Below, one piece after another: positions 11,321 to 50,700 of a stretch of 64,000 nt of DNA. The position numbers were made by a program, and so were the translations under genes. The notes beneath the pieces are model-generated. The model ran no database searches, had not been told where the DNA came from, and worked only from the letters and a program-made list of their open reading frames with translations. This stretch comes from Hydrolagus colliei (taxonomy: Eukaryota). Where the stretch lies: assembly GCA_035084275.1 (NCBI GenBank), contig CM068756.1, forward strand, positions 14,384,001 through 14,448,000, written 5' to 3'. How positions within the stretch are numbered: position 1 is the first letter of the stretch; each line of letters starts with the position of its first letter.

Positions 11321-14300
11321 TTATGCGGTTGCTGTTTCCATGACAGTGACAGCTTTGTATTTCCTGATATTTACTTCCGCATACTCTGAATTCTTGCCGC
11401 TGGGTTTAGCTTTTCCTGTTTGTTTGGAGCGAGGTAAATCCAGATCAGCGTAGGTCAGCTTGTCAGGGGCGGTTCCTCGCTTGGTCTGAAAAAGAACAAT
11501 GTTTGGGATTGTCTTTTTGCTGGTTCCATGTATAGATGTACATAGAATGGTACGGAAACTGGACAGCCAGTGTTTATACTTCACACGACATCCATCCTTG
11601 CCTATTTTCTTCTGTTCCTCTCGAATCTCTTCTCATTTATGCAACAAGTTTTATGTTGATAGTAATGTTACATTATTGTGAACCCATCATCCCGTGGCCA
11701 ATTGGTAAATATAATTCAAACTGCGATATCCAGCTGCAGATTTAAGGGCTGTAGATCTCAGCGACGAGCTGCCAGCCACTTTCATGTGTTGGTCCAGATT
11801 GGTTATCGCTGCCATTCCTAATTGCTCTATGAAAAACTAACATCTCAGGACATTTGAATAGGAACACATGTGATCCTCTTTAAATTATTTGGTGAATTGT
11901 TGCTTCTTGTATAAAGATACAATCTTAGCAATTGATAGCCTGGAAATGCTCTTTTAAACTGATCCGTTTTATAAATTTCCTTTATCGTCAGATAATAAAA
12001 TGATATTAGGTAAATCCTGAAAGGCTGAACGCGTTCGACAACCAAACGCAGCATCCAAAAGTGTTAGAAGATTCGATGGGATGGGATGGGGGTGGATTGG
12101 GGGAACAAAATCAAGGACAAATTTGGTTACCTGGGCGTATACTGTCCTCTCTTCCTGGTGTTTAGCTCTTGTTGTTTTATTGGAACTTTTCAAATCCAAT
12201 GTTACATAAGCCACATTGTCGCCCTGTGCTCCCTCCCCCATCTGTAAAACAAAATATAGAGTTAAATGGTTCCTCGATTGCCTTCCTTAATCCGTACTCT
12301 TTGACCATGGTATTGAATCAGTAGGGATTTTAGAGGAAACAACGGCTGTCTTCAAGTTGAATGGTTAAAGACAGATAATATTCAGTAAGAAGATCGAATT
12401 CTCTCTAGAGGCAGTGAAATTCATGTTTCCAACTGAGGTTTTGCCATGTACCCCCAGTGAAAATGTATTGCTGATTAAATGGATCAAACAAGAATTCTCA
12501 CTTAAAGTATTATCATTTAAAACATGCAGTTCCCAGTCACAGGCCTGACTTGGAAGGATTACTAGAAAGGTAAGTTACTGCCAGCAAACCGTGTTTATTC
12601 AAGGAACAACTTAATCCTGAATTGGGAAATAGATAGGTGTATAATTATGTAGGAATGATGCTAAGCTTGGGAAGTTTTAGTCCATACTCCAATTAAACGT
12701 AAGCCTGTCTTGTTGTGATGGGATGAGATGTGAACGGTGTCCTGGCGAATCATAATCAAGATAACTTAGTGATACACTTCGACAGCAACAACAAAATTGC
12801 ACGTGTATAGCGCCTTTCACGTCAGGAGGACGTCCGCAGGCGCTGGACAGTCACTGCTTCAGACCCGAGCTGAGGACAGGGGTGGGGGAAGGAAGTGGGG
12901 GATTAGGATTTGCCCATGGGTCCATCGAAGAGAAGTGTCTTGAGGCGAGACTTGAAGGAGGCCAGGATGGGGGTGAAACGGAAGGACTGCGAGATGGAGT
13001 TCCAGAGGTTGGGGCAGAGTGGTTGAAGGCTCGCCCACCAATGTTGAGGTGGGTGGATCGGGGAACGTGGAGAAGGCCAGAGCCTGCTGAGCAGAGGGTT
13101 GGTTAGGAGGTCATGGATGTAGAGTGAGGCGAGGTTGTGAAGGGCTTTAAATATGAGCAGCAGGATCTTGAATTGGATCCTCTGGTCCACGGTTTATAGA
13201 ACCATATTGAGTGCAAATTGGTTGTAGCAAATAGAGTCGCTACAATGATAACGATTAGCAGCCGTGAAGACATTTGGAATTATAGGGGCCACAATGATAA
13301 TTACTAAATTACCATGGTATTGGAGGAGAGGGTAGGAGAAATGGATAGAATAATTATAATCAGAGAGGAAGTTCTAAAAAGGTTGACGTCGCTCAAGGTG
13401 GATAAGTCACCTGGTCCGGATGGGATGCACCCTAGGTTACTAAGGGAGGCACGGGAGCAAATAGCAGGGACTCTGGCCACGATCATTCAATCTTCCTTGG
13501 ACACAGGGGTCATGCCAGAGGACTGGAGGATAGCTAATGTTACTCCCTTGTATAAAAAGGGGCAGAAGGACAAGCCTGGTAACTACAGACCAGTCAGTCT
13601 AACGTCGGTAGTGGGCAAACTTCTAGAGACCATAATCAGGGACAAGATAGATCTTCACTTAGAAAGATATAGGCTAATAAAGGACAGTCAACATGGATTT
13701 GTTAAAGGCAAATCTTGCCTTACAAATCTGATATAATTTTTTGATGAGGTAACGGAATGGGTGGATAATGGTAGCGCAGTTGATGTAGTTTACATGGACT
13801 TTCAAAAGGCATTTGACAAAGTGCCACATGAGAGACTTATAAGGAAATTAAAGGCCCATGGCGTAAAAGGGACAGTGGCAGCGTGGATCCACAACTGGCT
13901 GCGAGACAGAAAGCAGGGAGTTGTAGTGAGCGGCTGTTTTTCAGACTGGAGGGAAGTGAGCAGTGGTGTGCCACAGGGATCAGTTTTGGGACCATTGCTG
14001 TTTGTAATCTACATCAATGATCTGGACTTGGGTGCACGGAGTACAGTTTCCAAGTTTGCAGATGACACTAAGTTAGGGCGAATAGTAAATAGTGAGGAAG
14101 ATAGTAGCCATCTGCAAGAGGATATAGACAAATTGGTAAAGTGGGCAGACACATGGCAGATGAAGTTTAATGCAGAGAAGTGTGAGGTGATGCATTTTGG
14201 GAGAAGAAATGAAGGGAGGCAATATAGGCTAGATAGTACAATTTTAAATGGTGTGAAGGAACAGAGAGACCTGGGGATTTGTGTTAGTGACTCATTGAAG

Positions 14301-17300
14301 GTGGCAGGACAGGCTGTTAAGAAGGCATATGGGATACTAGGCTTTATAAATAGGGGTTTAGAGTACAAAAGTCAGGAAGTGCTGACTAACCTCTATAAGA
14401 CTTTGGTGAGGCCTCAGCTGGAATACTGTGTTCAATTCTGGTCACCACATTACAGAAAGGATGTGAAGACATTGGAAAGGGTACAAAGAAGATTTACTAG
14501 GATGGTGCCAGGATTGAGGGACTTCAGCTATGAGGAGAGGCTAGATAGGCGAGGGTTATTCTCTCTGGAGCAGAGAAGATTGAGGGGAGACCTAATAGAG
14601 GTTTATAAGATCATGAGGGGTTTCGACAGGGCAAATAGAGAAAAACTATTTCCACTCGTGGGCGAATCTGTGACTCGTGGTCACAGATTTAAAATAGTTT
14701 CAAGGTGAAGTAGAGGGGAGCCGAGGAGAAATTTTTTCACTCAGCGAGTTGTTCGAATCTGGAATGCATTGCCTGAAAAGGTGGTGGAGGCTGATTCGAT
14801 AACAACTTTTAAAAGGGAATTAGATCTTTATTTAGGGAGAACAGGTCTATTAGGCTATGGGGAGCGGGCACGGCAGTGGGATTGAATCGCTCTTTTCAAA
14901 GAGCCGGCACAGACTAGATGGGCCGAATGGCCTCCTTTTGTGCCGTAAAATTCTATGAATCTACGAATCAAAATTGGTCCATTGGTCACCCAAATGATTT
15001 CGTAGAACCATAGAATCTTACGGCACAAAAGGAGGCTATTTGGCGCATTAATTCTGTGCCGACTCTTTGAAAAGAGCAATTCAATCCCACTCTCCAGCTC
15101 TCTCCCCATAACCACACAAGCCTCTCCTCCCCAAATAAACATCTACCTCTCTTTTAAAAGTTGTTATCGAATCGATAACAACTAATTTGGTGATACACTT
15201 ACCCAATCTTCAAGATTGCCTGATCGAGTCGGGTTTCCCTGTGATCCTAAATATGAATAAAATTTACTGAATTAAATATTTACTCATTCAAGGTTAACAC
15301 TAAAATAATATCTTGGTTCTACATTTTGGAATAAATGTAATGTCACGTAGAATCTCCACGTCACTCATTCTTTCTGAATATTCTGAACGCTGGAATTATT
15401 TCTGTTACTTATTTTAAATCTCAATATGGCTACACCTGACAAAGTATTCCTTAAATCTTTTTGTTTTTCATCTTAAGAAACTTACTTGTTTCCTGTACTG
15501 TGGGCTGCATCTTTATGCTGGGACTCAAAATAATAAAAACATATTTTCGATTTCACGCATGCAATATAATCTATAACCGAATTGTATTACTGATAAACGT
15601 TAACTTGGTTCTAGTCCCTGCATTTGTTTGAAGCCATTCATCACCACAGTTAATTACAAATGCACATAATTCAACGTGTTTTAAGCCGGTTGAAATATAT
15701 TAAGTCAGATTTCAGACATTGGGTGTTGGAAAATAAGAAATTCTGGGATATTACAGTTCACCGTGTGAAATTGTTACAGTACTGAATCTGCTGCAATAAC
15801 TACAAGGAACATTTTCTCTGTGCTATGCATTGGTGCTTTCTAAGGTTTTGTATCAATAAATAAAGTTTAGAATTAATTGCAATGAAACCATAATTTGCTT
15901 ACCATTTTTCAATTGGTATCGCCACAAAATTAAGATCAAAAGCAACAGAAATATGAACACACCCGCCGCACATCCACCCCATAGTGCGTATTCGATTTCA
16001 CTTGTATTATCTGGAGAAGTAGAGTACATGGAGGTGAAACTGTACATTGTGTAGAGGGACGATTTGTAGATTCAGTAGAATAAAAATTTTAGGCAGTTCA
16101 TTTGTAAATTATATCTTGCAGTGATTTCAAGTAATTATTAAGCACAGTATCCAGTTTTATCTATTATATCTAATACTAATCTGTGTATTTGTTGAAATAT
16201 GAATAAACATTACAAGGAGACCATCACTGAAAACAGTTTGATAGTAATGTAGGGAAATACGGGTGTAGCCAATGAATCCGCTCTCGTTTATTCTGATCAT
16301 GGCTCTTGGTTTTAATATGCAGGAGAGGGTGGCACACAGAATAATGAAATAGAACATTGATTTCCAGAGTAACCCTCACAAAATACAATCCATAAATTGT
16401 AGCGTAAGATGCTTGTACCTGTTGACATCTGATTGCAATGAACAGTGCTCATTTCCTAACAAACAAAAAGCAGGAACTTGATGGGATAAAAAACATTTGA
16501 TGATCAGGTGTACTGAGCTGCCCGAGGTTATCGGACACTACCATTTGGATAATATTGGTTCGGTTCAACAAAATACTTGATGATTCACGTAAAATCTTTC
16601 ACAATCAAACGGCATAATGTAGCTGATCACCATCATGCACCCTCATCACCATCTCAACACATTTGTCTCCTTTTAACTCTGGCATCGCTTCCTATCGCTA
16701 CAGGTCTCCCGGGAGAGAGAGACAGTCACATTCCATGCCTCAAGTCACAGGCAGGAGCTGCCGAACATTGGCTGTACCTCAGGGCTCAATCCCTGTTCTT
16801 CTGACCTTCACTATCTATATGCTCCCACTTGGCGACAGCATCCATAGACATGTATCGCATGTCCACAGAAATCAGGATCTTGCAAAGAAATGAATCAAAA
16901 TTGATTTTTTCCAGATGATTGATGAAATTAATATGATTTTCCTCCATTATCTGTTCTACAGTTCCCCCAACCCCACTGAGGATTTTCTGTAGGAATTCAA
17001 CTAAGCATTGGACAATTGTGTGTGAAACTACCGCGTTTTACCCAAAGGATTTCACCCTCACATGGTATAAAAATGGGAACCAAATTACACCAACATCAGG
17101 ATCTCCCGTCCTCCTCCACACAAAACATCCACCTTCAGCCCGATTAGTGTCAAACATCAAGTCTTTGATGAGCTCTGACTTTCTTCAGCTGAATAATAAT
17201 CATCTCTGCATTTTAGTTAGAGCCTTATATATCGAAATCAGTGATTAATATTATTACTACCATCTCGTTATTGTTGTCTCAAATTGCATGAGACAATTGA

Positions 17301-19253
17301 CTGAAAGGCGCTATACAAATGTATTTTTGTTATTGATTTTGTTAATCAATGCAACTAAGACAATTGAATTATCAACAGTTGACTTTTTAAAATTCAGTTA
17401 GCTTCTTACCTGCGTTAGGTTTTGGGATGGAATGTTTTGTGTCAGTGTAGGTGGCAATAGCTGCAGACTTCAGGCTGACGTGGGACACCAGACAAGTATA
17501 AACAGACGCTATCTGGACAGACTGTGTGTCTTCAATAGAGCTAGAGACCTTATAGAGTTCCCACGAGTTCTGCTTTTCTATGGTTACTGTCTCTTCCACC
17601 TTGATTCCTGATGTTGGTGTAATTTCGTTCCCATCTTTATACCATATGAGGGTGAAATCCTTTGGGTAAAACGCGGTAGTTTCACACACAATTGTCCGAT
17701 GCTTAGTTGAATTCCTAGAGAAAATCCTCAGTGGAGTTGGGGGAACTGTAGAACAGATAATGGAGGAAAATCATATTAAATTTCATCAATCATCTGGAAA
17801 AATTCAATTTTGATTCATTTCTTTGCAAGATCCTGATTTCTGAGAGCAAACGGAGGTTTCTTTAGATACACAAATATCACTCGCACAGCTGAAGATGCCT
17901 TCCTCCTACTTTAATTACTTTGTTGTTTGAACATTAATATTCAGTCATAATAATTGTCTTCAATAACATACGACGTATAATGATTAGCAGACAGAATTGA
18001 TCGCTGCAAACTCTTGAACAGGGGAGATAGTGGATTCCTGACAGGAATCAGCACACTGTGGTATTCTAGATCAATTGATAACATTCCAGCCTCTGAATTA
18101 GCGTGGCTTCATGCTCCACATCGGGACTTAGAATTCATATAGTCAACACTGAAACACCCGCTGCAATGCCATTCTTAGGATGAGAAATCAAATCTGGGAA
18201 CATTTGCGCTGCCTCCACTCTCCTGGGTCCGGCCTCCTGGTTGTCCCCAATCCTCCGTTCAACCATCGGCGGCCGTGCTTTCAGCCACTACCCGAAGCTT
18301 TAGAACTACCTCTCTCAACCCCTTCACCTCAACCCCTTCACCTCAACCCCTTCACCTCAACCCCTTCACCTCAACCCCTTCCTTTCCCATGTGCAGGTCG
18401 CGCCTGAAGACCTTCTGTTCGACGGCGCCTATGGCTTCAGCCTCGAGGCTCCGCCAGTCTGAAGCGCTCTGATTCGCTGCCCGGTATGGAGTGCGCTATA
18501 GCAAAGCCAGCTGTTGCTTTAACATTATTCGATAAGTGTGGTGAGTTGTACTATTTTGTGTTTTAGGTGTGCAGAGGTTAATTCTCACTTAATATACTGT
18601 ACTCTAAAAACTAGTGAACAAACTAGTATGAACAAACAATACGAAAAGCTTTAAAGCATTCACTGCATTTATTACTTTCTATGTAATTTTCAGGTGCTTT
18701 CACTCTTCACTACACACTCACCCTGCACAGTTAAACGTGATCCAGGTCCTGTTCCAATTCCTGATCCCTGACGGATCACTGAGCAGCGATAGACTCCAGA
18801 GTCCTGTAAACTCACATTCAGGAGCTGGAAGAAGCCGCTTCCTTTGCTTTTCACACCAAATGTTTTCCTGCTGTCCGCCTGTGTGTCCAAGTAGCCGTCC
18901 TCACCCTCCTTCTCCCACTTCACCTCCACTTCAGAACCGTGTTGAGAGAAGGGGAAGATACAGATGAAATTGATGTCTGACCCTTTGATGACAGTCGTAT
19001 GTTCGGGGTTTTGACTCACTATGACCGAAGAACCTTCAGGGACTGTCAGAAAAGAAAGTCAATCAATGATACATTAGATGATGCGTCGTGGAGTAAACAG
19101 ACGAGTAAAAGAGGAAAGGACCGTAAGTGTATATAATTAACGCAAAGAAACAAGCTTGCACATATTTCATAGAAGAACTAAATTATAGAGTAAACATATA
19201 CCTGTTAAAATAAAAGTTAAGACAGACAGGTACAGAAAGACAACGCTCCCCAT
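11321..19253 (-). CDS. G2: intact inhibitory SIRP-alpha-like V-C1 receptor (type-2 V), four-tyrosine tail
   Basis: Leader 19202-19253 (MGSVVFLYLSVLTFILT), V 18722-19042, C1 17410-17745, TM 15903-16010 (YALWGGCAAGVFIFLLLLILILW), cyt1 15203-15246 (GSQGNPTRSGNLEDW), exon A 12131-12241 (VAYVTL...TVYAQ), exon B 11321-11485 (LTYADL...SEYAEV...*). Phases are 1-1-1-1-0-0 and the frame is open. Confidence 0.88.
12785..13190 (-). mobile_element. L2-type LINE 3' fragment
   Basis: (CAA)n followed by tatagcgcctttcac tail. It is absent from the paralogous intron copy at about 7.03 kb. Confidence 0.7.
13305..14969 (+). mobile_element. 5'-truncated CR1 LINE, ORF2 reverse-transcriptase region
   Basis: ORFs 13314-13736 and 13761-14708 contain KSPGPDG, PEDW, NYRPVSL, DFQKAFD, GVPQGSVLGP and FADD. 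Stops fall at 13734 and 14706, and the tail is (TTCTATGA)-like. The pre-insertion site is preserved at 8120. Confidence 0.92.
15003..15170 (-). mobile_element. CR1 3'-end fragment
   Basis: Reverse complement of 14800-14960. Confidence 0.75.
16866..17101 (+). repeat. Inverted duplicate of G2 C1 acceptor region and 5' part of the C1 exon
   Basis: Reverse complement of 17606-17842 with about 8 differences by manual alignment. The ORF 17018-17248 CETTAFYPKDFTLTW is this copy. Confidence 0.9.
18170..18520 (+). mobile_element. L2-type LINE 3' fragment with an internal 14-bp tandem repeat
   Basis: L2 3' sequence, with aaccccttcacctc repeated about 4 times at 18317-18378. Confidence 0.65.
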
Positions 19254-19318
19254 GTCCGTCCCTGGCTCTGCTGAGGTTGTGATACGCGGGTGAAGCGTTT
19301 GTTGCAGAGTAAGCAGCC

Positions 19319-19335
19319 GTGACACTGACTTCCTG
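19319..19335 (-). promoter_or_regulatory. ETS (CAGGAAGT) proximal promoter element of G2
   Basis: gtgacactgacttcctg is identical upstream of the G3 leader (21576-21592). Confidence 0.5.
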
Positions 19336-19920
19336 TTTTACATGGCTTTCTTCAATGAATCCAAACTGAAGGTGTATTGTTTGCTTTAAAGTATTGTTTG
19401 CTTTAAAAAAGTTTGCGTTGAACCGACGCCCTCAACCACAGAACACGCACGTAGCAAGAATGCATATCTGTTGTTACATCAACATTGAAATATTGTGCCC
19501 AGTAGGTACAGCTACTTTACAACAACAACTTAGATTATATAGCGCCCTCCACGCCGGACGGCGTCTCAGAGCTCTTTTCGTATTACTTTACTGTAATACG
19601 AACAGTGTAATTGCTGGAAAAAGTTCACAACCCGTGTTCTATGTGTAACTCAAGACAGCAAGACTCTTGTGATGGAATTATCCTTTGATATTTACAAGTA
19701 AGGCAGGACTATTTGGGTTTTGATGCTGAATTGTTTCATATCCGGTATATTTTTAGCAGATAGGTGAATAATTCAACACCCACGCTTCAAATTATTTCAC
19801 TGCTTTGGACTATTCCGCCACACATTGTTAACCAGCTCTTAAATTATCCCTCGCCAGGTGTTGTTTCGTTGATGTTGATGAGACAGGGCGACTAGAGGAG
19901 ACCGGTTTATACAACTTGCT

Positions 19921-19926
19921 TTTATT
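19921..19926 (-). promoter_or_regulatory. Putative polyadenylation signal of G3
   Basis: AATAAA in the conserved 3' flank block shared with G1 and G5. Confidence 0.5.
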
Positions 19927-20268: not shown

Positions 20269-21516
20269 TTACTTTGATCTTGGTTCCCTGACCACGGCTG
20301 CTCCTCCGTGGTTTCTCAGATGGAGCTCAGCTTACTCTGTATCATTAACGGTAGTCAAATTCAACGTGACATAAGCCACCATCAACTTCTCTGCTCCGTG
20401 CATCATCTTTTACAGATAACATGACCACAACAACAACACATTGTGTTTGTAGAACACCTTTATTGTTGGGAGTACATCGCAGGGCGCTGACAGATTGTTG
20501 GATTCGCTGTTCTACCGATCGCTGTATACGTACTCATCGTGATGCTGATAAGTTTAGAATACTTCAAATATTTAAGAAGGAAACTTACATATTTATTAAA
20601 TATGCTGTTAACAATTACATGACATCTCGTATTTCAGTGATACCCCCACCACCCGCTCGGGTCCTGACCAGACTGTTCAGTGCTTTGGGACGTCCTCCCG
20701 AAGCGAAATGTGCTATATAGGTGCAATTTTGTTGTCGTTGTTGTTGATACATTGGGATTGAATAATTGCATGTGGGGATTGCATTTAAAATGTTCTTGTT
20801 TGCGGTGAACTGTATCTTTCCATTTCAACAACTCTGTTTTCAGATTAAATATCTGCTGCAATATAATGTACCTATTCTTCGCAATGTCTCAATCCCTTCT
20901 GATTTCTGCTTGTGCCTTTGAAAGAAATTCATATTTTGCTTAGACCAAATGAAAAACGTTTCGAAGCTCACGAGCTACCAGAGTCTATATTTCTAAAAAT
21001 ATATATAAAAAGTTGTCATCTTGAATCAAACTGAGTTTACTTAGCGGCTAATCTAAACACAGATGTGGAGTCACAAAAATCAGACAATTGTGATAAATTA
21101 TTTTGCACTCATTCCTTTCAACGTATTTCCATCCACTGCCCCGCGCTCCCTGAAACTCCATCCAAGAGCCTCTTTCAAGCACATCCTTCAAAAGCTTTGA
21201 TGAAATAACCAATTAATAGCTTGTTAAGGGGATAAGATATCAAACCCAAAAGGTAGCCACACTTTCGGGGATTTGAGTCACTTTCACTGAAGAATCACCA
21301 GCAACTGTGAGAAGATCGTCAAACAATGATATCTTAGATAATGTGTCAATGGGAAAAGCAAGCGAGTAAAAGAGGAAGAAACATGAGTGTGTATGATAAG
21401 CAGCAGATGGAAACAAGCTTGCACACATTTCATAGAATAACTAAATTGTAGAATAAATGTATACCTGTTGAAATCATATGTAAGACAGAGAGGTGCAGAA
21501 AGATAACACTGGCCAT
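20269..21516 (-). pseudogene. G3: internally deleted chimeric SIRP-like gene lacking most of V and all of C1 and TM
   Basis: Leader 21465-21516 (MASVIFLHLSVLHMIST). V start 21256-21304 (VAGDSSVKVTQIPESV) is fused to the TM-cyt1 intron. Cyt1 20872-20915 ends in TAG. Fused A/B exon 20269-20406 reads MMHGAEKLMVAYVTLNLTTVNDTE*. Confidence 0.85.
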
Positions 21517-30166: not shown

Positions 30167-33100
30167 TTACTTGGATCTTGGTTCCCTGCAGATAGCGGCG
30201 GCTGCTCCTCCATAGTTTCTCTCATGGAGCTCTGCATACTCTGCATTCTTAATGGTACTTTTAACTTTTCCTGTTTTATTAGAAGGACAAAGATCCAGAG
30301 AGGCGTATGTCATCTTGTTCTCCGTTGCCCCTTGCTTGGTCTGTAAAGGCAATAGTTGAGAATTTATTTCTATTAATTTGTTTTCAGTCTTCAGAAATCT
30401 CCTCAAATATGCAGCAACACTTGCCTCATAACTCATTTGATGAAGTCACTCTTTTAAAGAACTGAGCCAAACAGAATGTAGTGGCGACAAATTCTGTTAC
30501 GAACAGTTAGAAAAGAGCAGTGAAAACAATGTATGAGTTTTTTATTGATCTACAGAAATGTGGGATGTATATTTCCATATATAGTTGATGTCCTCAGTGC
30601 CTCATAAATTGACACACAATAACTAGTCTTATACAAGAAAACAAATTATTTGGCTGTACAGTTAACCCTTGCCGTACATGGGGGTTACGTTTTTGGAACA
30701 CTGCACACTCGGTAAAATTGCGTTGGGTAAGCTTAACAAGTAATGGGAAAAGGGGGTTTAGGGGAATCCAGCCACAGGCTACCCACCCCAAGCCTCCAGG
30801 CACATCCACACTTGACCACCACCAACAACAACAACGTCAACAATAACAATTTATATAGCGCCCTCCACGCCAGACGGCGTCTCAGAGCGCTTCACAGTAG
30901 CGGATCCCGGGACCGAGCCAGGAGCAGGGGCAGGAAGGTGACCAAAGGTGACGAAAAGTTCGGTGACCAAAAGCTCGGTGACCAATGCAAGGTACACACT
31001 GAGGTGGACAACAGCCGGCTAGCACGCTCTCCCCGCTCTCATTTCTCTCCCCACTCTCCCTGCTCTCCCCACTCTCGTCACTCTCCCTGCTCTCATCGCT
31101 CTCCCTGCTCTCCCTGTTCTCATTGCTCTCCCAACTCTCCCCGCTCTCATCGCTCATCACTCTCCCCACTCTCATAGTAGTCCAAGGCCAAGGAATCATC
31201 AGCCTCAAACTCCATTGAAGTGGATGCTTGGGGAGAGGCAGAAGTGGATGGCCGAGAAGATGCAGCAGCAGGTAAGTGTCAGCGGATGACTGCTGAGACA
31301 AACTGGCAGGTTGAAAGAAGGAAGTGATTTTCCGTTGTTTTGCCTTCCACTAGAAGTCTTTCATGAGCTCCCTGTAAGGCCCTAAGAGGCCATCCAGACC
31401 TGTTTTAAATTTCAGACTCCTTTCCATTATAGGGTCCATCTCCAAGCTTGACCTCCCAAGTGTGCATTGCGCGACCGGCATCCTCCCCAGTGCGAATGCG
31501 CGCGGGGTCAGCCAGCACTTTGCAAGTTTTACACGTGTTACACAAAAGAGTGATGCATTTTTTTCTTCTCATATAGTTGAATTCGCAATCGAGAAAGTTG
31601 TGTTTAGCGATGGTTAACTGTACACTGGCAGGTTGTTGCAATCATACCACAGCTCAGGACAGTGCCGAGAGTGAAGATCAGAGGAGAAAGAAAGATTAAA
31701 CGTAGACTAAGAAGAACAGCAAAATTGCACTTGTAAAGTGCCTTTCGTGATGGGAGGATATGTCAAGGCACTAGACGGTCTGTTTTAGACCCGAGCTGGG
31801 GTCGGGATCGAGGGGGGTGGAGGGAAGGGAGGGGAGTGGTGGGGGCATCATTGAAGCAGAGGTTCTTGATGCGGGACTTGAAGGAAGCTAGGGAGGGTGC
31901 GAGGCAGAGGGATTGCAGGATGGAATTCCAGAGTTTGGTGGCAGAATGGTTGAAGGCTCACCTGCCAATGGGCAGGCGGGTAGGTCGGGGGACACAGAGC
32001 AGGCTGGAGCCCACTATGTGGAGGGAGCGGACAGGTTGTTAGTGAGTTACAAGGTCACAGAGGTAGAGTGGTGTGAGGCCATGGAGGGCTTTAAAGGTGA
32101 GTACCAGGATCCTGAATTGAATCCTTGGGATGATGGGGAGCCAATGGAGTTAGGCCAGAATGGTGGCAATGGGGTCAGGGAGCTTGATTTGGGAGAGAAC
32201 AGGTGCTGCAGAGTACTGGATGATCGCAGCCTATGGAGGGAAGAGTTAGGAAGGCTGACAAGCAGAGCGTTGGCATAATCGAGGGAGGACGAGAACAGTG
32301 CAGATGGTAACTGCTGGAGTTCGGAGGGTGACGTGAGATACCAGACAGGTATAAACAACTCCGCTCTAAACGGATTAACCCTGGAATATGGGCTGATTAG
32401 GATATGCAGCACCACTTACCTCATAGGTCATTTGGTAATGCCACTGCTCTTTCCTGAACTTAGCCAAACAGAATTCAGTGGCCACAATACTGTTCGGAAT
32501 AGGTTAGAAAAGAAAAGTGAAAATCAACCCAAGATGTGCATTGACCTACAGAAATGTCTGTGTGTATCTTGTTGGTACATACTTGATATTCGCAGTGTGG
32601 CATAGATTGACACACGCAATAAAGCAGAAGAATAAATATTTCACTATACAGTGGCAGACTGTGGCCACCATATCACTGGAAAGCACCAGAGAGTGAAGAT
32701 TAGAAGAGAAAGAAAAATTAACCGTATTATATTTGCTATATATCAAATGCCAGGATTATTACTAGTATTAACCACAGGAATAGTACAAACTGTCTTACAG
32801 TGAGCACTGAAGTTAGTTCCACTCTATTTACTGAAACAATTTTGTATTTCTCAGATATACCTGAGCGTACACTGTCCTGTCCTTTTGTTTTTTAGGTCTT
32901 GGAGGTTTCTTAGAACTGATCAAATTTAATGTGGCATAAGCCATCCGCTCATTCTCTGCTCCATGCATCATCTAAAAAACAAAACGTGATCACAACAAGA
33001 ACAACATTGCATTTGTACCTTTCACGTAGGGAGTACATCCCAGGGCGCTGACAGATTGTTGTCTTCACTGTTCTCAAGATTGCTGTGTAAGTACTCATCA

Positions 33101-40344: not shown

Positions 40345-40429
40345 TGTGATCAGTTGTTCAGACTCGCCCTGAGCCTCTTGCTGGTGTAACACGGGTTTGC
40401 TGGTTGTCTAATATAAAATAATTCACAGT

Positions 40430-40445
40430 GTCATGTGACTTCCTG
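40430..40445 (-). promoter_or_regulatory. M-box plus ETS composite element of G4
   Basis: GTCATGTGACTTCCTG, as in G1. Confidence 0.5.
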
Positions 40446-43129
40446 ACAGATATGAGTTGGATGCGATTTGCAAAGAAAATTGTGCGTTTCAATTGTGACT
40501 TGAATCAATCTTCAGATCGGCAGCAAAGAGGAAGGTTAATTATGTCCATACAATTATCTGTTATTGTTTTCCCCATTCTTGTATTAATTCTTCCTTTTCA
40601 TGCTAATATTCAGTAATAACAACAAAATTACATTTTACAGCACTTTTCACGTCAGGAGGACCTCCCATTTATAATTGAAAACTCACATTTAGAACAAGTA
40701 ACTATATGTCTTTAATCATAAAAATACTTGCATTTGATATAGCACTTTTCACATCTTCTTTACGTCTCAAAGTAGTTCACAGAATATGCTTTAAAGTGAA
40801 TTGACTGTATATTTGTGGGCGAAACGGACGGCAGCCAATTGCGCATAACAGTGCCTCACTAATAGTCGTGGATTGAAATAACCAATTTAATATTGTTTGT
40901 TTCAAGAGGGTCTGATCAGGTGTGTGGAATAAGGAAATTTGCCAAAGGTTTTCATCCGGCCGGGAATACAATCCGGGTCTCTCATTTGTAAGATGAATGT
41001 TCCAAACACTCAGCCGCAACACATAACTGAAGAAATGCCTTGCTCTTCAGTTTAACATCAGTTTTAGGATGGAATTCCAATGGAAAGCCCACTGAGAGCC
41101 AAAATGATCTTTGAATCGACCATGTAGATTTAATTTATCTAATATTCTGAGCAAAGTTACAATGATTCCCTTCAACTTGAGCAGTTAATCATTCAAAGCA
41201 GCCACATATTGCCATGTTATGTTTTCATAATTTATTGAACATAATTCAATGTGATGAATACAAAAGTTATGTAGCAGGTTCGTCCTAATAATTTAGCAAC
41301 AGATGTTACAGAAATACAAGAAAACATATTTCCATTATTTCTAAATTAATTTATTTTCTTTACACACACTGCAATAATAATGAGTTTCTCTCAATAAATA
41401 AATTACCAGTTGTGCAGTTGAGTTGGAGAAATAACTGTAAGTAAATAGGGATCCTTTATATGTGATTGATTTGCCCGTATTTGTACACAGTAATGTCTCA
41501 TAAGCATGTATGAAGTGAATGACCAATTTTCTCTACAGAATTATTGATCATGATACTGTACTCTGACGATCCAATTTAACTGAGGAGTAACATTGAGGGA
41601 TTTTTAACTGAACAGACAGCCTGGACCTCGGTTCAAAATCTCATCTAAAGGATAAGAAAAATAACTTTCATACATATTGTGCCTTTCATGCAGGTTAGCG
41701 TCTCCGAGCATCTCAAACTACGATAATGCAGACAGATCACTTCGGCATTGGAGCGTCAGCCTAGAACATGACTTCAAAGTGTCAAACTTGGGCTTAAATC
41801 CAAATTGTCTGATTCATGTTACCAGGTATCATCTCATGGAAATTTCGATTGCACAGCATTCTCAGTCTCAGCTTTGGATAATGTCCATTGATAGTGTTTG
41901 ACAACGGCAGCAGAGGTGAACCATATGTATGTTTTGGAACCTCAGAATTGTACCTTGGCCCCATTCTTTTTCTCATCGTCATGATTTCTCTCTCTCTCTC
42001 TCTCTAATATTATCGACAGAGCAACGGTTAACTCTCACATTCATATGAATAACAGCTAAATCTAATTTTTTTACTTCTACTATTGATTCCAGGTATATTG
42101 ATGCTCTAGCCGTTTGCATGTCAACACCTAGATGAGCCCAGACTTCTTCTGACTTCATATGGATGAAGGAAGCCATCCTCCTGTCAACAATTCCTTTGTC
42201 GCATGTTTGCTGCACCCTCTCATTTCACTATATATCCCATGAAGCTACTTGAAATGTCTCAACAACATGATAAGGTCCTATATCAATAAAACATTGTCCT
42301 TTCATTATTATTAGATTCCTACACCCTAATTTATGTAAATCCCTCCTCATCCCAATATGTCCCACTCTTTCTCAATCTGCCTTTGATCTGACTCAATTCC
42401 TACCTTTTCCAACCTTTCTTTATCTACATCTCTCTTGGCCTCTCACCTCTCCCTTGATCTGTATCCAACCCAAACACTTTGAAGTCCTGATAGGCAATAC
42501 CCAATGTGAAGGATACTGTAATACTCTATAATAATCTTTGTATTGATATAATGTCTTAGTGCATCTTCGAGATACCTTAAAGTGTTTCACAGAATATATT
42601 GTAAAATGAATTAAAACGATGCTGTATAAATGCGTTGTTAATAGGTAACAAATAATCTAATCAATGCAGGATATTTTCTTAAATATATTATCCACTGACA
42701 AATCTATGCAAATAGTAGTTTAGGGACATCATGCATATCTGAGTGATTGCGATATTCACGAGCTGCCTTCCTAAACCATCACGTGAAAATGGCTTGTTGA
42801 TGGACTCAATCGGAAAGGTCAATACCCACGTCAACTGTAGCTTCTCTCTGTATCATTGTCATTTATTGAGGAGAAATGTCACAGAGCATAGGAAGTTTCT
42901 ATAAATTGTATATCCTATTCCAGACATTAACTCATATGGGATTACTCACTTAAACAATGCTATTTACTACTTGGTAATCCTATTAGCGCATCCTGGAGCA
43001 TTTTTGTTTCCAGCTCCATCCTCTCGTGAATACATTTGGCAAAAATGTCTTTCCATGAATTTCAGCATCCTCAAGTATCACGTATATATGGACCTTATTA
43101 ACACCTCCCACTGAATATTAGCAAATCCG

Positions 43130-43950
43130 AGGCATCCTGATTGGCATGCGCCTCCTCATTTCAGGCACTGGCAGCATCAGCATCCACAGATGCACACTCC
43201 ACCTTGCGAAGCCAGTCAGGAACCTGGGTGACTTGTTTGACCGTGAACTGTCCTTTCTCCACAATCCATGCCATGACCAGCAACACCTTCCACCACCTTT
43301 GTAACATTGCCAAACTCTGTCACTGCCTCAATCCCCAGGAAACTGAAACCCATAAACCCATTGTCATCCCAAGGCTTGACTATAGCAACTCACTCCTCGT
43401 CAGCCTCCACAACTCTTCCCTCCACAAGCTGCAGATCATCCAAAACTTTGCAGCTCATGTCACCTCACGCACCATGCTCTGTGACCCTATCATTCTCAAA
43501 CTCACCCAGTTCCACTGGTTCCCATTCCTCAGAGGATTGATTTCAAGATTCTTGTGCTCACTTTCAAGGCCTGGCACGGCCTTGCCCCTCCTACCTGTCT
43601 GACTTGCTGACCTCCTATCAACCCGTCCATTCCGTCCATTCAGCAGTCTCTGGCCTGCTCCATGTCTCCTGCCCGACACACCCTACCGTCTGCGGCCAGG
43701 CTTTTAGCCTCTCTGTCCCTACGCTTTAGAACTCCATCCTACAATCCCTTTGCCTCACTTCCTCCCTTTCCTCCTTCAAGACTGGTCTCAATACCCATCT
43801 CTTCCATCCTGTCTTCAGTCAAATTCTACCTCTCTGCCCTCCCTCATCCCCAAACCTGCATCCCCCAACTCACTGTACTCGGATCCTGACCCCTGACTGC
43901 TGAGTGCCTTAGGACGTCCTCCTGACATGAAAGTTGATCGACTATTTTGG
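43130..43950 (+). mobile_element. L2-type LINE 3' fragment
   Basis: ORF 43141-43602 contains HLCNIAKL..RLDYSNSLL..LHKLQIIQN, followed by an L2 tail. Confidence 0.75.
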
Positions 43951-46241
43951 TTGCTGTTGTTGTTATTCATGTTTAACAGGCAGAGTCAACAGATCCTATG
44001 GCTCTACTCAACAAGTGAGGACAGATTATCCTGTGTCCTGGCCAACAATTTCCCCCCAAAAATTGGTGATTCTTTTCATGGTTGTTTGTTGGACATTACT
44101 GTGTACAATTAGGCCACTGCATTTGCCTGCAACTGCAGTCATGACACTGCACAGCTTCCCGTGATGTGCTTTGAGATGTCAGCCCAACATGAAAGGAACT
44201 GTACCAATTGCAAGGAGTATTATTAGGTTCCAATTGTCGTGTGTCCATTTTAATTTTCCTCAGGTTCTGTGCATTAAATGCTATTTAATTAACTGATAGC
44301 AAACCTGTTGCTTTCATCTTTTGTAATTGCTCAGATGATCATGAAATAATTTCAAGAAACATTGATCTGTAGCTCGTTCTGAAACATTAGAATTGTTTGC
44401 AAATTATGGCACCTGGTGGCAGACTGTACCGTATTTATAATATGAAAAGCTGTAATCTACACAATTGTTTCCCTCGTTCACCTGTTGCACCTTTGTTTGA
44501 GTGGCTGAGTATGTTCTCTGAACCCTCTGCTGGTGACCATTGGTGACCATATCTCCATCTACTATCTCACATATCTCTGGAATCTCACGTGTCTTCAATT
44601 GGCACTTTTTCCACTTCGACTGTGCCTATGGACAATACAACTTGCACCCTGGCTCAGTGACACATTCTTCCACTGGTCAGTGCTGGGTGTGTTATATATA
44701 CGGTAGTTGTTGTTGCTTCTATACTTCCATCAGAGAGATGTATTGAAAACCCAGAAGACCATTTTTGCTCAGCTAGGCTTCTCACACATGCAGAAATCCT
44801 TACCATGCTTATGTGAGTCACACTGCTTAATTTGAAAGAATGTTCTTTGGTGAGAAGTAATAATAATAATGCTATTAATAATGCTATTGACATAATAATA
44901 ATGCTATTGACATAGTGAAATGTGGCAGCCAATTGCACACAGCAGTGTCCCACAAACAGTTGTGGATTGAAGTGACCGATTTTTTTTCTTGAGGGATTAT
45001 TATCAGGCATGCAGATTAAGGAACAATGTCTAGTGTTTCACCCTGCCAGGAATTGAATCCAGATCTCTCGATTCCAAGGCAAGTGTTTTAATCACGAAAA
45101 TACAGGATTACACACGTCATTTGGGAGGGATGAGTCAACGTTGGATAGAAAGCAAATACCAGGAATTACCTTGCGTTGAGTATCACATCAAAGCATTAAA
45201 TGTGTGAGAAGATAGACCCCTATTCTCCTGCGCATCTCGGCACATATTCATGTGGATTGGGCGATGGCTATACCAGTTGGTGCGGTGCCATTTTATTCAA
45301 GCATGGAGTGAACCACTGAATAACACTCCAACAATGTATTTAAAAAAGAGGTTTACATTACAATAGGACCAACAGATAGTTTTGCCCCAAAATACACAAA
45401 GCCGCAGCAGGTTATACTATCGCCTGTAATACTCTTAGAAACATTGTGATGATGGGATAAAGCACTATATTAAATTCATGGATAATTAATAAACACAAAT
45501 TTGAATTAACAACAACAACGTCGATTTATACACTGCTCTCCACACTGGATAGCGTCTCAGAGCGCTTCACAATAGCGGATTCCAGGACCGAGCCAGGGGC
45601 AGGGGTAGAAAGGTGACCAAAGGCGCGGTCGAAGAGAAAGGTCTTCAGCTGTGACCTGAAGCTGAGAAGAGAGGGGGCGAGGCGAAGGTAGTGGGGAAGG
45701 GAATTCCAGAGCCTCAGGGCATCGTGGCTGAAGGCACAGCCACCGAGGATGGAGCAGAGGATTCGGCGGATTAAACCACTCTACAGTTCATGCTTCACTT
45801 CTAGTGGACCAGGACACAATGTTCACTGCGATATACCTCACGTAGTACGAATGCATAACTGTTATATAAACAAAGAAATATTGTGCACATTTGGTACAGC
45901 CGCTTTACTACAATAACCACAGCCTAATGGATGGAAACAGTTCATAACCCATGCTCTATATATAATCTAAGAGAGCGTGACTCTTGTGATGGAATTATTC
46001 TGTGACAGTTATAGGCACAGCAGAACGTTTCATCACTTAGTTGTTTAATGTAGGTATATATTTAGAAGTTAAGTCAACAGCTCAACAGCTCACCGCCCAC
46101 GCCACAACTTTTTCACTGAGTTGGACAAACTGCATCATATTTTGTTGGCCAACTTTCATGTTAGCCCATACCAAGTGTTGTTTTATTAATACTAAAGAGA
46201 AAGAGTGAGCAGAAGAGACTGGTTTATGTAACTTATTTGGT

Positions 46242-46247
46242 TTTATT
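46242..46247 (-). promoter_or_regulatory. Putative polyadenylation signal of G5
   Basis: AATAAA at the conserved 3' flank position. Confidence 0.5.
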
Positions 46248-46379
46248 GAAAGGCTGATTGGACATGTTACACGACAGTTTTGTTGCTTAACGCGTTGTTT
46301 ATCCTGTTGGTTTTAGTTTTGTAGCAGCTAAATAACTTTTGTTAATCAACTAATTCAGTAGTTATCTTTATCAATTTGA

Positions 46380-47670
46380 TTCACTTGCATTTGATATAGT
46401 GCTTTTCACGACTTCTACATATCTCAAAGCGCTTCACAGAGTATACTGTAAAGTGAATTGACTGTAGATTTGTGGGTGAAACACGGCAGCCAATTGCACA
46501 CAGCAATGTCTCACAAACAGCCATGGATTGAAATGATATCATCATTGTATTTTTTTTTCGAGAGATTATTATCAGATGTGTGGAGGAAGAAAACTTGCCC
46601 AAAGTTTTGTCCTGCCTGGAATTGAACCAAGGTCTCTTGCTTGCCAGCCGAGTGCTCTACCACTGAACTACAGGACTTCAAATATTAAAATAATGTTTGA
46701 CAACAACAACGACAACAACAATTTACATTTATAGAGCGCCTTTCATGTCGGGAGGACGTCCCAAGGCGCTGAACAAGAGGCGTGTGACCCGAGCTGGGAG
46801 GGGAGTGTTTGGGAAGGGGTGAAACACGAAGGGGAGGTAAAAGAGTTCGGGGTGGAACAAAAGGCACGATCGAAGAGGAAAGTCTTCAAACCGGCCTTGA
46901 AAGAGGAAAGGGAAGAGGCGAAACGGAGGGATTGAGGGATGGTATTCCATAAGGTGGGAGAGGAGAAACTGAAGGCCCGGCCTCCGATGGTGGGGCGGTT
47001 CGGGTGGGGGGCTTGGAGCAGGCCAAGTCCTGTTGAACGGAGGGTCCGGGTGGGCGTGTAGGGGGAGAGTAGATCAGTTAGGCAGGATGGGGCAAGGCCG
47101 TGTAAGGCCTTGTAGGTGAGGACGAGGATCTTAAACCCGATCCTCTGGAGGATGGGGAGCCAGTGGAGACGGGCGAGGGTGGGGTTATGTGGTCACGGAG
47201 GCGGGTGCGGGATAGTTTAAGCATGGCTATATAGACATAGTAATCAGCTTTCTAAGAGATTTCCTAAAGATATATAATGTAATAAATCAACTTGTGGTTG
47301 AAACAGGTGCAAGTAGAATATATAGCACAGGAATCGTGTGCACATTATTCACTATAATAATAATCCTTGCTTTTAATATAGCACTTTTCACATCTTATCA
47401 ACGCCTCAAAATGGTTGATAGAAAAACTATAAAGTGAATTGAAGTGTATATTTGTGGGCAAAATGCGTCAGCCAATTGTGCACAGCTGTGTCACACAAAC
47501 AGTCATGGATTGAAATGACTAATTTTTGTTATTGTGTTTTTTTTGGACGGATTATTATTAGGCGTATGGTGTAAGGAAACTTGTCCAAGGTTTCGCCCTG
47601 TCCTCCCTGGATACGAACACAGGTCTCATGCTTGTATGGCAAGTGCTCTAACCACTGATATACAGGAGCT
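46380..47670 (-). mobile_element. SINE - L2 - SINE insertions in the G5 3' UTR/flank
   Basis: SINE 46380-46680, L2 46690-47210 and SINE 47360-47670 interrupt the block homologous to 29.9-30.1 kb. Confidence 0.7.
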
Positions 47671-47725
47671 TCTGGTGGAAAAGTATGTCTAATGTACATT
47701 AATATTAATTTCTGCGCCTGTTGCG

Positions 47726-50700
47726 TTATTTAGATCTTGGTTCCCTGCAGACAGTGGCTGCTGCTCTTCCATGGTTTCTCACAGGGAGCTCTGCATACTC
47801 TGTATTCTTAACGGTACTTTGCAGTTTTTCTGTTTTATTGGAAGGACGTAAATCCAGAGAGGCGTATGTCATCTTGTTCCCCGCTGCCCCTTGCTTGGTC
47901 TGTAAAGGCAATGTTTGAGAATTTATTTCTATTAGTCTGTTTTCAGTCTTCAGAAATCTGCTCAAATATGCAGCAACACTTGCCTCATAACTCATTTGAT
48001 GAAGTCACTGCTCTTTTAAAGAACTGAGCCAAACAGAATGTAGTGGCGACAAATTCTGTTACGATCAGTTAGGACAGAGCAGTGAAAATGAACAGTGTAT
48101 GAGTTGTTCATTGACCTACAAAAATGTGGGGTGTGTATTTCCATATACAGTTGATGTCCCCAGTGACTCTTAAATTGACACCCAATAACTAGCCTTACAC
48201 AAGAAAAATAACTATTTTCTATACAGTTGCATATTGTCACAGTCTTTGCACAGAGCCAGGATAGTGCCGAGAGTGAAGATCAGAGGAGAAAGCTTATTAA
48301 CCAAAGATATGGTACTGCAGTCAGTTCCACTCTATTTACCAATGCAATGAAATTAGGTGGATACAAAAGGTTTATGTCTCGATTTTGTGTTTCTCAGATA
48401 TACCTCGGCGTACACAGTTCTCTCCTCATGTTTTTTCAGTCGTGGAGTTTTCTTGGAACTTGTCAAATTCAACGTGACATAATCCACTGACTTGCTCTCT
48501 GCTCTGTGCATCATCTATAAAAGAGAATGTGATCACAACAACAACACATTGCATTTGTAGAGCACCTCTCACATTGGGCTACTACTAAATATTTGTCCTC
48601 ACTATTCTGAAGACTACTGTGTACTTGCTGATCATAAAGCCATTAAATTTAAAATATTATCATTTATCTTCCATATGTTTTACAAGCAGACAGTTTTATT
48701 TAATACCACATTACCAATTGCTTGATACTGGGCACCTCTTATTTCAGTGATATATTGAGGCTGCGTAGATACGCGTAGGAAATCTATTTAAAATGCTCCT
48801 AGTTATTTATAATGAACAGCATCTTTCCATTACAACAACTCTGGTTTCAGATGAAACATTTACTGAGATGAAGAAATATACCTGGTCTTCAAAATGTTCC
48901 GATCCCCTCTGGTTTTCAAGCGGGCCTTCGAAAGAAATTAACAAATGAAAATTCACTCAATTTCCACAAAAGCATTTCTGGATATAGTTTGCTTTGACAG
49001 GATGTAAAGCGATTCAAAGTCCAAGAGCTTTTTTAAAAATAAAGTTGTCTTCTTGCATCTAATTGTCCTTATTTAGACTTCAATCTACAACAACAACAAC
49101 TTTGATTTATATAGCGCCCTCCACGCCGGACGGCGTCTCAGTGCGGCTTCACAACAACGGATTCTGGGGGTGAGCCAGGGTCAGGGGGAGAAGGTTGACT
49201 GAAGACGCGCTCGAAGAGAAAGGTCTTTAGCCGAGACCTGAAACTGGGAGGAGAGGTGGAGAGGCAAAGGGAGTGAGGAAGGTAGTTCCAGAGCCTCAAA
49301 GCGTAGTGGCTGAAGGCACGGCCGCCAATGGTGGAGCAGAAGATTCGGGGGACAAGGAGGAGGCCACACCCAGTAGAGCGAAGGCAATGGGTGCTGTTTT
49401 GAGGAGACAGGAGGTTGGAGAGGTTGAAGGACTGGGGTAATGGGGGAGAGAAGTTTGACGTGGGTGAAAATGCAGGCGGCAGAGGTTTGTATCAGTTGGA
49501 TTTTATGGATTGTGGTGGAGGGGAGACCGGTGAGGAGAGCATTGGTATAGTCCAGCAGAAAGGTAACAAAGGCATGGACCAGGGCTTCAACGGCTTTGGG
49601 GGCGAGATGTTGGCAGAGACAGGTGATCCGTCATAGGTGAAAAAAAGCGGTACTGGTGAGGGACTGGATGTGGGGGATGAAGGACAGTTGTGGGTTGAAC
49701 CTGACACCTAGGTTGCATATGGGTTCGGAGAGTTTTAGGGGCAGGCCCGGTAGGTAGAGGAGGTGAGAACCATGTGGTAAAGGCAGAAACCTAAACCCAA
49801 GAGTAGAGTAAAATAAATTACACAATTCATAACCTATCTTGTCCTCTCACTCTTATTCTTGTTAACGTATTTCCATTCACTAACCCTGTTCTCTGTAACT
49901 CCATCATGGAGTCCCTCCAATTCCCTCTTTCTTAAGCCTCCTTCAAAATCTGCTACAAAATAACCGAGAGAATAGATAATCCAGAATATAAAATATAAAA
50001 CCAAAGACTTGTTCATTACACAATTAGAATATTACATCCAGTATAATTTACCTCATTTAGGATATTAACCAGAATGATATCGGGGAGAATCGTTTTGCCA
50101 TATGAGCAGAGACTGGAGAAAGTAGAAGTTTTCCGCTTGGAACAAGGAGGGTTGAAGTCGACCTGATAGAGATCTTTAAAATCATGAGTGTTTCCATTGC
50201 GTCAATGTAGAGTTTATTTCAAATGTAATGTGAGCTAGCAAACAAGCAGAAGTGTGGTTGGAAAACTCTTTCCCAAACACTGAGTTGTTAGATTATGTAA
50301 TCCCAGGTCAGACGAAATGCTTGACCACATTAGCTTTCAAAAAGATACTGGATACAATACCTTAAAAGAAATAAATGAGGGAGTATAGATAGGTAAATTA
50401 GATATGTCTCAAGATGCATTTATTTGACCTTGATTTAAGCCATTTTTCCTTTCCCCACTACCCCATCCCACTGGATGCCTGGCCAGCAGTGTCAAGCACT
50501 TTGGAATTTCCTCCAGACTTAAATGGATTATATAAAAGTATAATTGTATGGCATATTTGTATTATTCTGTTAAATATTGTTCTAATTTACAATAACCTCT
50601 TTGACCCAAATTCTGAGTTATATCACTGCATTTCTATCGATAGCTTTTACTTTTCTCCATCTATATAAACAATCTGGATTGTGGTATAACAGGGCACAAT

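Follow-up and report, generated by a model that had tools for sequence, protein, structure and literature searches.

The 64-kb window of the Hydrolagus colliei genome analysed here (64,000 nucleotides of assembly GCA_035084275.1, contig CM068756.1, positions 14,384,001 to 14,448,000) contains three complete minus-strand genes, G2, G4 and G5, which belong to a tandem cluster of immunoglobulin (Ig)-type receptors. Their cytoplasmic tails are specified by two exons, designated A and B, and the evidence firmly supports that these are duplicates of one exon, being homologous from the splice acceptor onward. From the comparison of exons and introns it appears likely that this modular exon, which carries two tyrosine motifs, was duplicated as a terminal exon, that the upstream copy was internalised via a splice donor located on a Val codon, and that splicing from A to B is the default.

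The gene models were obtained by mapping homology to exons of the window itself and to proteins of Callorhinchus milii (Table 1). All three genes consist of a signal peptide, a V-set domain, a single C1-set domain, a transmembrane (TM) segment and the tyrosine tail. Since the TM exon ends in phase 1 and the following exon, cyt1, in phase 0, exon A is a symmetric phase 0-0 exon whose reading frame is fixed by the exit phase of cyt1; exon B also begins in phase 0. In each of the three genes exon A measures 111 nucleotides (nt), or 37 codons, and is preceded by an acceptor of the form ...ttacag or ...tttag, while exon B extends about 20 codons beyond this cassette unit to the stop codon. The preliminary description of this locus had placed tyrosines at codons 12 and 35 of both exons, and they were indeed present in 6/6 exons, the first within an xxYxxL motif and the second within a TxYxx motif. 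Likewise, its account of the exon A border was confirmed: exon A ends in TVYAQ or TVYAE directly before GTA, splicing brings Thr, from the ACC codon of exon B, to the third position after the tyrosine (Y+3), and read-through gives TVYAQV or TVYAEV with a stop after 10 codons in G4 (VYLRNTKLFQ) and 16 codons in G5 (VYLRNTKSRHKPFVST), the last intron of G5 being 504 nt long as it had stated. In G2 the read-through continues for 53 codons.

Splicing of A to B is annotated in models from C. milii (P0040, P0003, P0035), Heptranchias (P0007) and Heterodontus (P0039). The default product of the Hydrolagus genes would join the two exons in the same manner as these NCBI Callorhinchus and shark models, resulting in a tail with four tyrosines, as predicted for G2, G4 and G5 alike, and with Thr at Y+3 of the second one. 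Read-through would instead yield TxYxxV and a tail with two tyrosines, and is regarded as a by-product of the architecture. With [S/I/V/L]xYxx[I/V/L] as the consensus for an immunoreceptor tyrosine-based inhibitory motif (ITIM), the G2 tail showed three strict matches (VAYVTL, LTYADL and SEYAEV), the G5 tail one strict match (VDYVTL) and two near matches (MTYASL and TEYAEL), and the G4 tail near matches only (MAYATL, MTYASL and AEYAEL). The consensus of an immunoreceptor tyrosine-based switch motif (ITSM), TxYxx[V/I], was not matched by the spliced products (TVYAQT or TVYAET) and fits only the read-through forms. Among the paralogs, Thr, Asn, Ile and Val all occur at Y+3.

The evidence for duplication comes from three kinds of comparison. 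When A and B were aligned without gaps and in register from the acceptor, 49-61 of 111 nt were identical (44-55%), which is 4.5-7 standard deviations (sd) above the null obtained from random placements in the same window (28 ± 4.7 of 111; 25% expected). A tblastn search with exon B5 against the six-frame translated window retrieved exon A together with its read-through at E values of 2.6e-6 (G2), 1.6e-4 (G5) and 3e-4 (G4), and hhalign matched a profile of eight A exons to one of seven B exons over columns 1-37 to 1-37 with a probability of 97.6% and an E value of 2.9e-12. The two exons also agree in length from the acceptor to Y+2 (111 nt), in phase and in tyrosine spacing, as tandem exon duplicates should, and the absence of A/B homology beyond chance, which the preliminary description had named as the finding that would overturn its proposal of a duplicated exon, was not what the in-register alignment revealed. 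Conceivably, the likeness could reflect convergence on ITIM- or ITSM-like motifs, with a chance match at the start of the intron. Several of the common residues (Y12, L15, T33 and Y35) are indeed motif positions, and a 15-nt match at the intron start, discussed below, has only a P of around 1e-3 for each comparison and is missing in G2. Convergence on motifs alone is nevertheless insufficient, because the shared residues exceed the motif positions, A5, S20, K22, T23, L26, A36 and E37 being common to A and B as well. With the identical length, phase and tyrosine spacing, the excess of nucleotide identity and the hhalign result standing against it, this explanation is already contradicted and we regard it as extremely improbable.

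As to how a duplicated exon became an internal one, the sequences suggest two steps. The terminal exon would first have been copied in tandem along with its acceptor, and the upstream copy would then have been internalised once AG/GTA (a slash within a nucleotide sequence marks the splice site), formed by the Y+2 codon and the Val codon at Y+3, served as 5′ splice site. Terminal exons with the corresponding sequence still exist. Exon B of G2 reads GAA GTA AAT ATC AGG AAA (EVNIRK), and exon B of the C. milii ortholog of G2, at locus L002, reads GAG GTA AAG ATC AGA AAC (EVKIRN); both encode Val with GTA at the site that corresponds to the A donor, and an AG precedes this codon at the very point where A-type exons are cut. 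In the C. milii paralog L006, the A intron begins with GTAAAGAT..., and its first 8 nt are identical to that B-type coding sequence.

The same route would have been reused in another Callorhinchus paralog, L007 (protein P0034), where a B-type copy was internalised two codons farther downstream. The middle exon of this gene (9764-9880) is of the B type and ends with ...TAT GCA CAA CTA CAG/GTGAGT AAC CAC GGT GGA..., while terminal B exons have ...TAT GCA GAG CTC CAT GTG AGA AAC CAC GGA GGA... at the equivalent place. The L007 exon and the following intron align with terminal B exons over 197 nt without a gap, with the TAA in the same column, though now within the intron. The alignment plainly reads as a duplicated terminal exon that became internal through a change from CAT GTG AGA to CAG/GTGAGT, in which the Val codon GTG and the adjoining codons turned into a consensus donor, the old open reading frame (ORF) and its stop being kept in the intron. 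L007 is an unambiguous, younger instance of the mechanism that the preliminary description had put forward for exon A, with the donor two codons downstream of the A-type position.

The opposite direction was also considered, in which A was always internal and B arose as a copy of A plus the start of its intron, losing the donor (GTA to CTC, ATA or TTA) and becoming a new last exon. The homologous block, comprising the acceptor, the 111 nt and about 15 nt beyond, would be the same under both directions, and at Y+3 the majority of B exons carry Leu or Ile instead of Val. However, the pattern Y-A-E-V-x-[IV]-x-[KR] is common to B exons of distant chondrichthyans and resembles the C-terminus of mammalian SIRP-alpha (YASVQVPRK/QRK), and because of this sharing the terminal continuation looks old as coding sequence. 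Moreover, the sole unambiguous case in the family, L007, runs from terminal to internal, and the opposite direction additionally requires an earlier terminal exon that is now lost. We therefore hold this alternative to be quite unlikely and favour the internalisation of a terminal copy.

The claim that exon A was once terminal is well supported as far as the mechanism is concerned, by the B exons of G2 and L002 and by L007. The relic in the intron on which the preliminary description had drawn fared differently. It had compared the intron starts of G4 and G5 (VYLRN) with exon B-type coding sequence, and in the 15 nt past the donor 9-10 of 15 positions indeed agree with the B exons (null 4.0 ± 1.7; P about 1.5e-3 per comparison, the comparisons not being independent). 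However, its comparator, the LHLRN string CTCCATCTGAGAAAC at 20311-20325, comes from a disrupted A/B hybrid exon ('G3') rather than from an intact copy of exon B, which has CTCCCTGTGAGAAAC in G5 and CTCCATGAGAGAAAC in G4. Compared with the G3 hybrid, 12/15 positions agree, and the similarity ends after that. Since sequence resembling exon B opens the G4 and G5 introns over some 15 nt, A-type exons appear to derive from terminal-type sequence, and the matches support a copied unit that would have extended past the present donor of exon A. As the split of A and B predates the divergence of chimaeras and sharks (see below), the VYLRN stretch more probably stems from later exchange among cassettes than from a relic preserved for more than 350 million years; between G5 and the C. 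milii locus L003, unconstrained intron parts are only about 60-66% identical.

That cassettes exchange sequence is indicated by mosaic cassettes, such as the first cassettes of P0041 and of the Heterodontus protein P0002, and by the hybrid terminal exons of G1 and G3. In the two hybrids, the upstream intron and the first 17 codons are 81% identical to exon A5, and the sequence from ACC GTT AAT through the 3′ untranslated region is 81-82% identical to exons B4/B5. Both have the same sharp junction, with codon 18 of A joined to codon 28 of B, and a TAA at the tyrosine codon of TEYAEL. A single deletion, in which the 3′ portion of A, the intron and the 5′ portion of B were lost, appears to underlie both exons, and the resulting tails would be short, with no more than one motif. 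The possibility that they represent the unduplicated ancestor was rejected, since they are mosaics with a common sharp junction and a common TAA. Just upstream of the G3 hybrid, the segment 21516-21255 on the minus strand contains a sequence resembling a signal peptide (MASVIFLHLSVLHMIST) and the beginning of a V exon; since C1 and TM exons are absent, G3 looks like the remnant of a heavily deleted gene.

The cassette is widespread among cartilaginous fish, with matches to each half of the mammalian SIRP-alpha tail. Chondrichthyan tails, from chimaeras, sharks and a ray, carry 2-5 cassette stretches, and for this reason the duplication appears both ancient and recurrent. The order of cassettes is A+B in P0005, P0007 and P0040, A+B′+B in P0004/P0034 and P0014, A+A′+B in P0039, and A+A′ with a disabled B in P0041. 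The distance from the acceptor to Y+2 was 37 codons in every readable locus except in Heptranchias, whose exon A begins three codons farther on. A maximum-likelihood tree of 42 cassettes placed the A-types of chimaeras, sharks and the ray in one group (ultrafast bootstrap, UFboot, 90; Shimodaira-Hasegawa-like approximate likelihood ratio test, SH-aLRT, 79) and every B-type cassette outside it, in agreement with the signatures QEERTVYAQ for A and TKQG..NKLTYA..L for B. The joint grouping of chimaera and elasmobranch A-types places the A/B duplication before the split of holocephalans and elasmobranchs.

Two further loci displayed unusual arrangements. At L004 of C. milii (10918-12866) there are two tandem A-type cassettes; the intron after the second begins with GTA TAA, so that read-through ends just after Val, and the B exon is disabled by a TAA at codon 3, the NCBI model ending in ...TVYAQTK. 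In P0002 of Heterodontus francisci (XP_067906074.1), a cassette pair is repeated within one tail with 100% identity, the repeated cassette being internal in one copy (...PIYAV/KEQG, the slash here marking the exon border) and terminal in the other (...PIYAVYSSSKY...). The repeat reflects a tandem duplication of very recent date or else an artefact of the model.

Several observations weigh against the internalisation of a terminal exon as set out above. The direction of change is unprovable without an outgroup gene structure. The cassette tree is weak, being based on 34 columns only, with 90/79 on its key branch. At the start of the G2 intron, only 3-5 of 15 positions agree with exon B, which is chance level, and nothing is similar beyond GTA. 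The 15-nt similarity in the G4 and G5 introns is not explained by neutral decay, so that conversion or constraint must be invoked. Finally, intron retention may not be mere noise, because three Ensembl-derived Callorhinchus proteins read through the donor of exon A.

The latter point concerns the proposal of the preliminary description that retention of the last intron switches the tail to an ITIM plus an ITSM, for which we found no support, the read-through ORFs being unconserved. Under this proposal, regulated retention would be a selected switch that converts TVYAQT or TVYAET into a TxYxxV ITSM and reduces the tail from four tyrosines to two. Val at the read-through Y+3 is guaranteed in every A-type exon examined, from the chimaeras to a shark, and the intron concerned is the last one, in which a stop codon should escape exon-junction-dependent decay. 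The Ensembl-derived C. milii proteins P0008, P0032 and P0033 (UniProt entries) end with TVYTQVYPRNTKSKHKPLVSNW..., an ending identical to the translation of the L003 intron, and the first 42 intron nt of the ortholog pair G5 and L003 are 88% identical, compared with about 66% in the remainder of the intron. However, the Val is automatic and needs no special explanation, because any phase-0 intron begins with GT. In nine A-type introns the read-through lengths were 1, 10, 10, 13, 15, 16, 24, 48 and 53 codons, with no conserved stop. G5 and L003 differ at eight places in the first 17 read-through codons, one of them synonymous, and the stop is changed to Trp; identity at the intron start is 28% between G2 and L002, and in G4 about 37 nt are deleted from this region. 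Furthermore, the Ensembl models (A0A4W3H4Z2, A0A4W3H5Y4 and A0A4W3H6H3) are two-gene chimeras, which combine the V and C1 exons of the upstream neighbour L001 with the TM, cyt1 and A exons of L003, and because of this joining they may be based on incompletely processed or misjoined RNA; the NCBI model P0040, in contrast, splices the same exon A to B. In L001 itself, a frameshifted B-type exon is located at 14942-15089 with no exon A, and the NCBI model stops after the TM exon. The spliced Y+3 also looks constrained, since Thr as the first codon of exon B was invariant in seven aligned B-type exons from the window, C. milii and Heptranchias. The GTATAT donor type is likewise found on the cyt1 exon, which is spliced in by the C. 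milii model P0040.

Three possible marks of such regulation were looked for and rejected. A weak donor is no sign of regulated retention, as cyt1 uses the same CAG/GTATAT or GTACAT type. Constraint on the read-through ORF at the protein level was not found, given the unconserved stops and mostly non-synonymous changes. Polyadenylation within the intron, by which exon A would act as a composite last exon, was dismissed because the read-through stops have no AATAAA or ATTAAA signal in their vicinity; in G5 and G4 such a signal occurs only immediately ahead of the exon B acceptor, the sole AATAAA of the last intron of G5 being located 28 nt before it. The ITSM switch is thus unproven, and judged by the sequences it is unlikely as a conserved function; we give little credence to its being a selected, regulated device. 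A related idea, to which we attach slightly less weight still, is that the intron between Y+2 and Y+3, in place since before the chimaera-shark split, may persist because splicing or retention toggles Thr versus Val. If this were true, shifted donors or a different first codon of the next cassette could act alike, and RNA processing would retune the recruitment of SH2 proteins, as a conserved mode of regulation of SIRP-like receptors.

G2, G4 and G5 are, judging from their domain and tail sequences, SIRP-alpha-like inhibitory receptors of the holocephalan lineage. The V exon of G5 reached 27.9 bits with the Pfam V-set model (cut-off 26) and the C. milii relative P0040 reached 38.5 bits. The C1-set domain, encoded by a single exon per gene, scored 66.6 bits for G5; mammalian SIRP family members have two such domains, and homology mapping of the window genes detected no second C1 exon between C1 and TM. 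The closest non-antibody solved structure for P0040 was the SIRP-alpha ectodomain 2wng (E 4.6e-16). When a profile of the six tail exons was searched against 1.84 billion proteins, 28 hits were obtained, and the source was looked up for 20 of these: 18 were chondrichthyan and 2 mammalian SIRP-alpha. The chondrichthyan hits, from Callorhinchus, Heptranchias, Heterodontus, Mustelus, Scyliorhinus and Pristis, were mostly named 'tyrosine-protein phosphatase non-receptor type substrate 1-like'. The two mammalian hits, SIRP-alpha of a bat and of the bilby, were each matched over two stretches (E 4.7e-5 and 2.7e-6). The exact products of the window were absent among the hits of the tail profile, the tail of the C. 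milii G2 ortholog P0003 being about 85% identical.

Mammalian SIRP-alpha (SHPS-1/PTPNS1/CD172a) and the chimaera receptors have in common an N-terminal V-set domain followed by a C1-set domain, a single TM segment, and four tail tyrosines in two look-alike pairs. Members of the SIRP-alpha family bind CD47 and recruit SHP-1 and SHP-2 after tyrosine phosphorylation, properties that are only putative for the chimaera genes. The mammalian protein differs in having two C1 domains instead of one and Ile (TEYASI) at Y+3 of the second tyrosine, where the chimaera spliced product has Thr; the tyrosine spacing of 23 residues in both halves of the chimaera tail is a further difference. Also unlike mammalian SIRP-alpha, the chimaera genes form a large lineage-specific tandem cluster with tails of 2-5 cassettes. 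Mouse SIRP-alpha has eight exons and, like the chimaera genes, encodes its cytoplasmic part on three of them, exons 6-8 (PMC12324903). A pair of bat SIRP-alpha isoforms differs by four residues, VQSS, inserted into the cytoplasmic part immediately ahead of the first tyrosine motif, and this insert, with Val as its first residue, may reflect an alternative phase-0 5′ splice site at an exon border.

The interruption of a tyrosine motif by an intron and the production of tail isoforms by splicing are already known themes. Mouse 2B4 has long and short forms and CEACAM1 L and S forms, whose tails arise by alternative splicing, as documented by cDNA and function. In these cases the choice of 3′ exon alters the number and kind of tyrosine motifs, as it would in the chimaera tails. 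A phase-0 intron that splits YxxL is described as characteristic of the exons for the immunoreceptor tyrosine-based activation motif (ITAM) in CEACAM genes of Xenopus and mammals (PMC5112662). As in the chimaera tails, the next exon completes the motif in CEACAM and classical ITAM chains, but there it restores the consensus Leu or Ile, whereas the chimaera spliced motif departs from the ITIM/ITSM consensus because the downstream exon usually supplies Thr. Literature searches on chondrichthyan SIRP-like genes or this exon history, and on exon duplication or intron retention affecting ITSMs, returned nothing directly relevant from the library searched.

Table 1. Gene models, tail exons and last introns in the Hydrolagus colliei window (a slash in a donor marks the splice site)
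Feature	Position	Strand	Remarks
G5 model	signal peptide 55429-55373, V 54889-54581, C1 52942-52637, TM 51642-51493	(-)	
G5 model, tail	cyt1 about 48925-48882, exon A 48514-48404, exon B 47899-47726	(-)	
G4 model	signal peptide 40344-40288, V 40076-39771, C1 37304-37005, TM 35866-35717	(-)	
G4 model, tail	cyt1 near 33296-33252, exon A 32971-32861, exon B 30340-30167	(-)	
G2 model	signal peptide 19253-19200, V 19031-18720, C1 17749-17444, TM near 16011-15907	(-)	
G2 model, tail	exon A 12241-12131, exon B 11485-11321	(-)	
G5 cyt1 exon	48882..48925	(-)	GPLENQRGSEHFEDQ; entry phase 1, exit phase 0, donor CAG/GTATAT
G5 exon A	48404..48514	(-)	MMHRAESKSVDYVTLNLTSSKKTPRLKKHEERTVYAE; 37-codon phase 0-0 cassette, donor GAG/GTATAT
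G5 last intron	47900..48403	(-)	504 nt; first 15 nt GTATATCTGAGAAAC in register with exon B coding
G5 exon B, terminal	47726..47899	(-)	57 codons and stop: TKQGAAGNKMTYASLDL...NTEYAELPVRNHGRAAATVCREPRSK, then stop
G4 exon A	32861..32971	(-)	MMHGAENERMAYATLNLISSKKPPRPKKQKDRTVYAQ; donor CAG/GTATAT
G4 last intron	30341..32860	(-)	2520 nt; enlarged by inserted repeats and a C1-exon fragment; G5-like start
G4 exon B, terminal	30167..30340	(-)	TKQGATENKMTYASLDL...NAEYAELHERNYGGAAAAICREPRSK, then stop
G2 exon A	12131..12241	(-)	MGEGAQGDNVAYVTLDLKSSNKTTRAKHQEERTVYAQ; donor CAG/GTAACC
G2 last intron	11486..12130	(-)	645 nt; start without exon B similarity beyond GTA
G2 exon B, terminal	11321..11485	(-)	GAA GTA AAT ATC AGG AAA (EVNIRK) retained
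'G3' hybrid terminal exon	20272..20406	(-)	A-type 5′ part joined to B-type 3′ part; source of LHLRN
G1 hybrid terminal exon	412..552	(-)	same A/B deletion junction; first Tyr changed to His

Several further features of the locus were recorded. The A-B intron of G4 contains a fragment like the 3′ half of a C1 exon (SGVVYTCLVSHVTLRTPAVTICTV; 32425-32294, minus strand), and the segment that normally precedes exon B is present twice in this intron, near 32440 and near 30445. A partial inverted copy of the G2 C1 exon is located at 16958-17086 on the plus strand, about 360 nt from the real exon, and long reverse-transcriptase-like ORFs of the long interspersed nuclear element (LINE) type lie at 13308-14705 (plus strand), antisense in the intron of G2 that separates exon A from the TM exon. 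Between G1 and G2, at 8352-8140 on the minus strand, there is a lone V-like exon with an in-frame stop, an intact counterpart of which adjoins the G2 ortholog in C. milii (L002, 21142-21456). The C1 exon of G6 (63901-63602, minus strand) also has an in-frame stop, between ...DTQPV and FGVVY....

Together these data document with coordinates how a four-tyrosine tail of the SIRP-alpha type is assembled in cartilaginous fish, and they provide exact exon borders and phases for the annotation of such tails. Tails with 2 to 5 motif pairs would have arisen because a symmetric 37-codon cassette was copied as a terminal exon and then internalised. The locus may accordingly serve as a tidy example of a last exon turned internal, of which a clean fossil survives in Callorhinchus, and it is of interest chiefly for the evolution of paired immune receptors.

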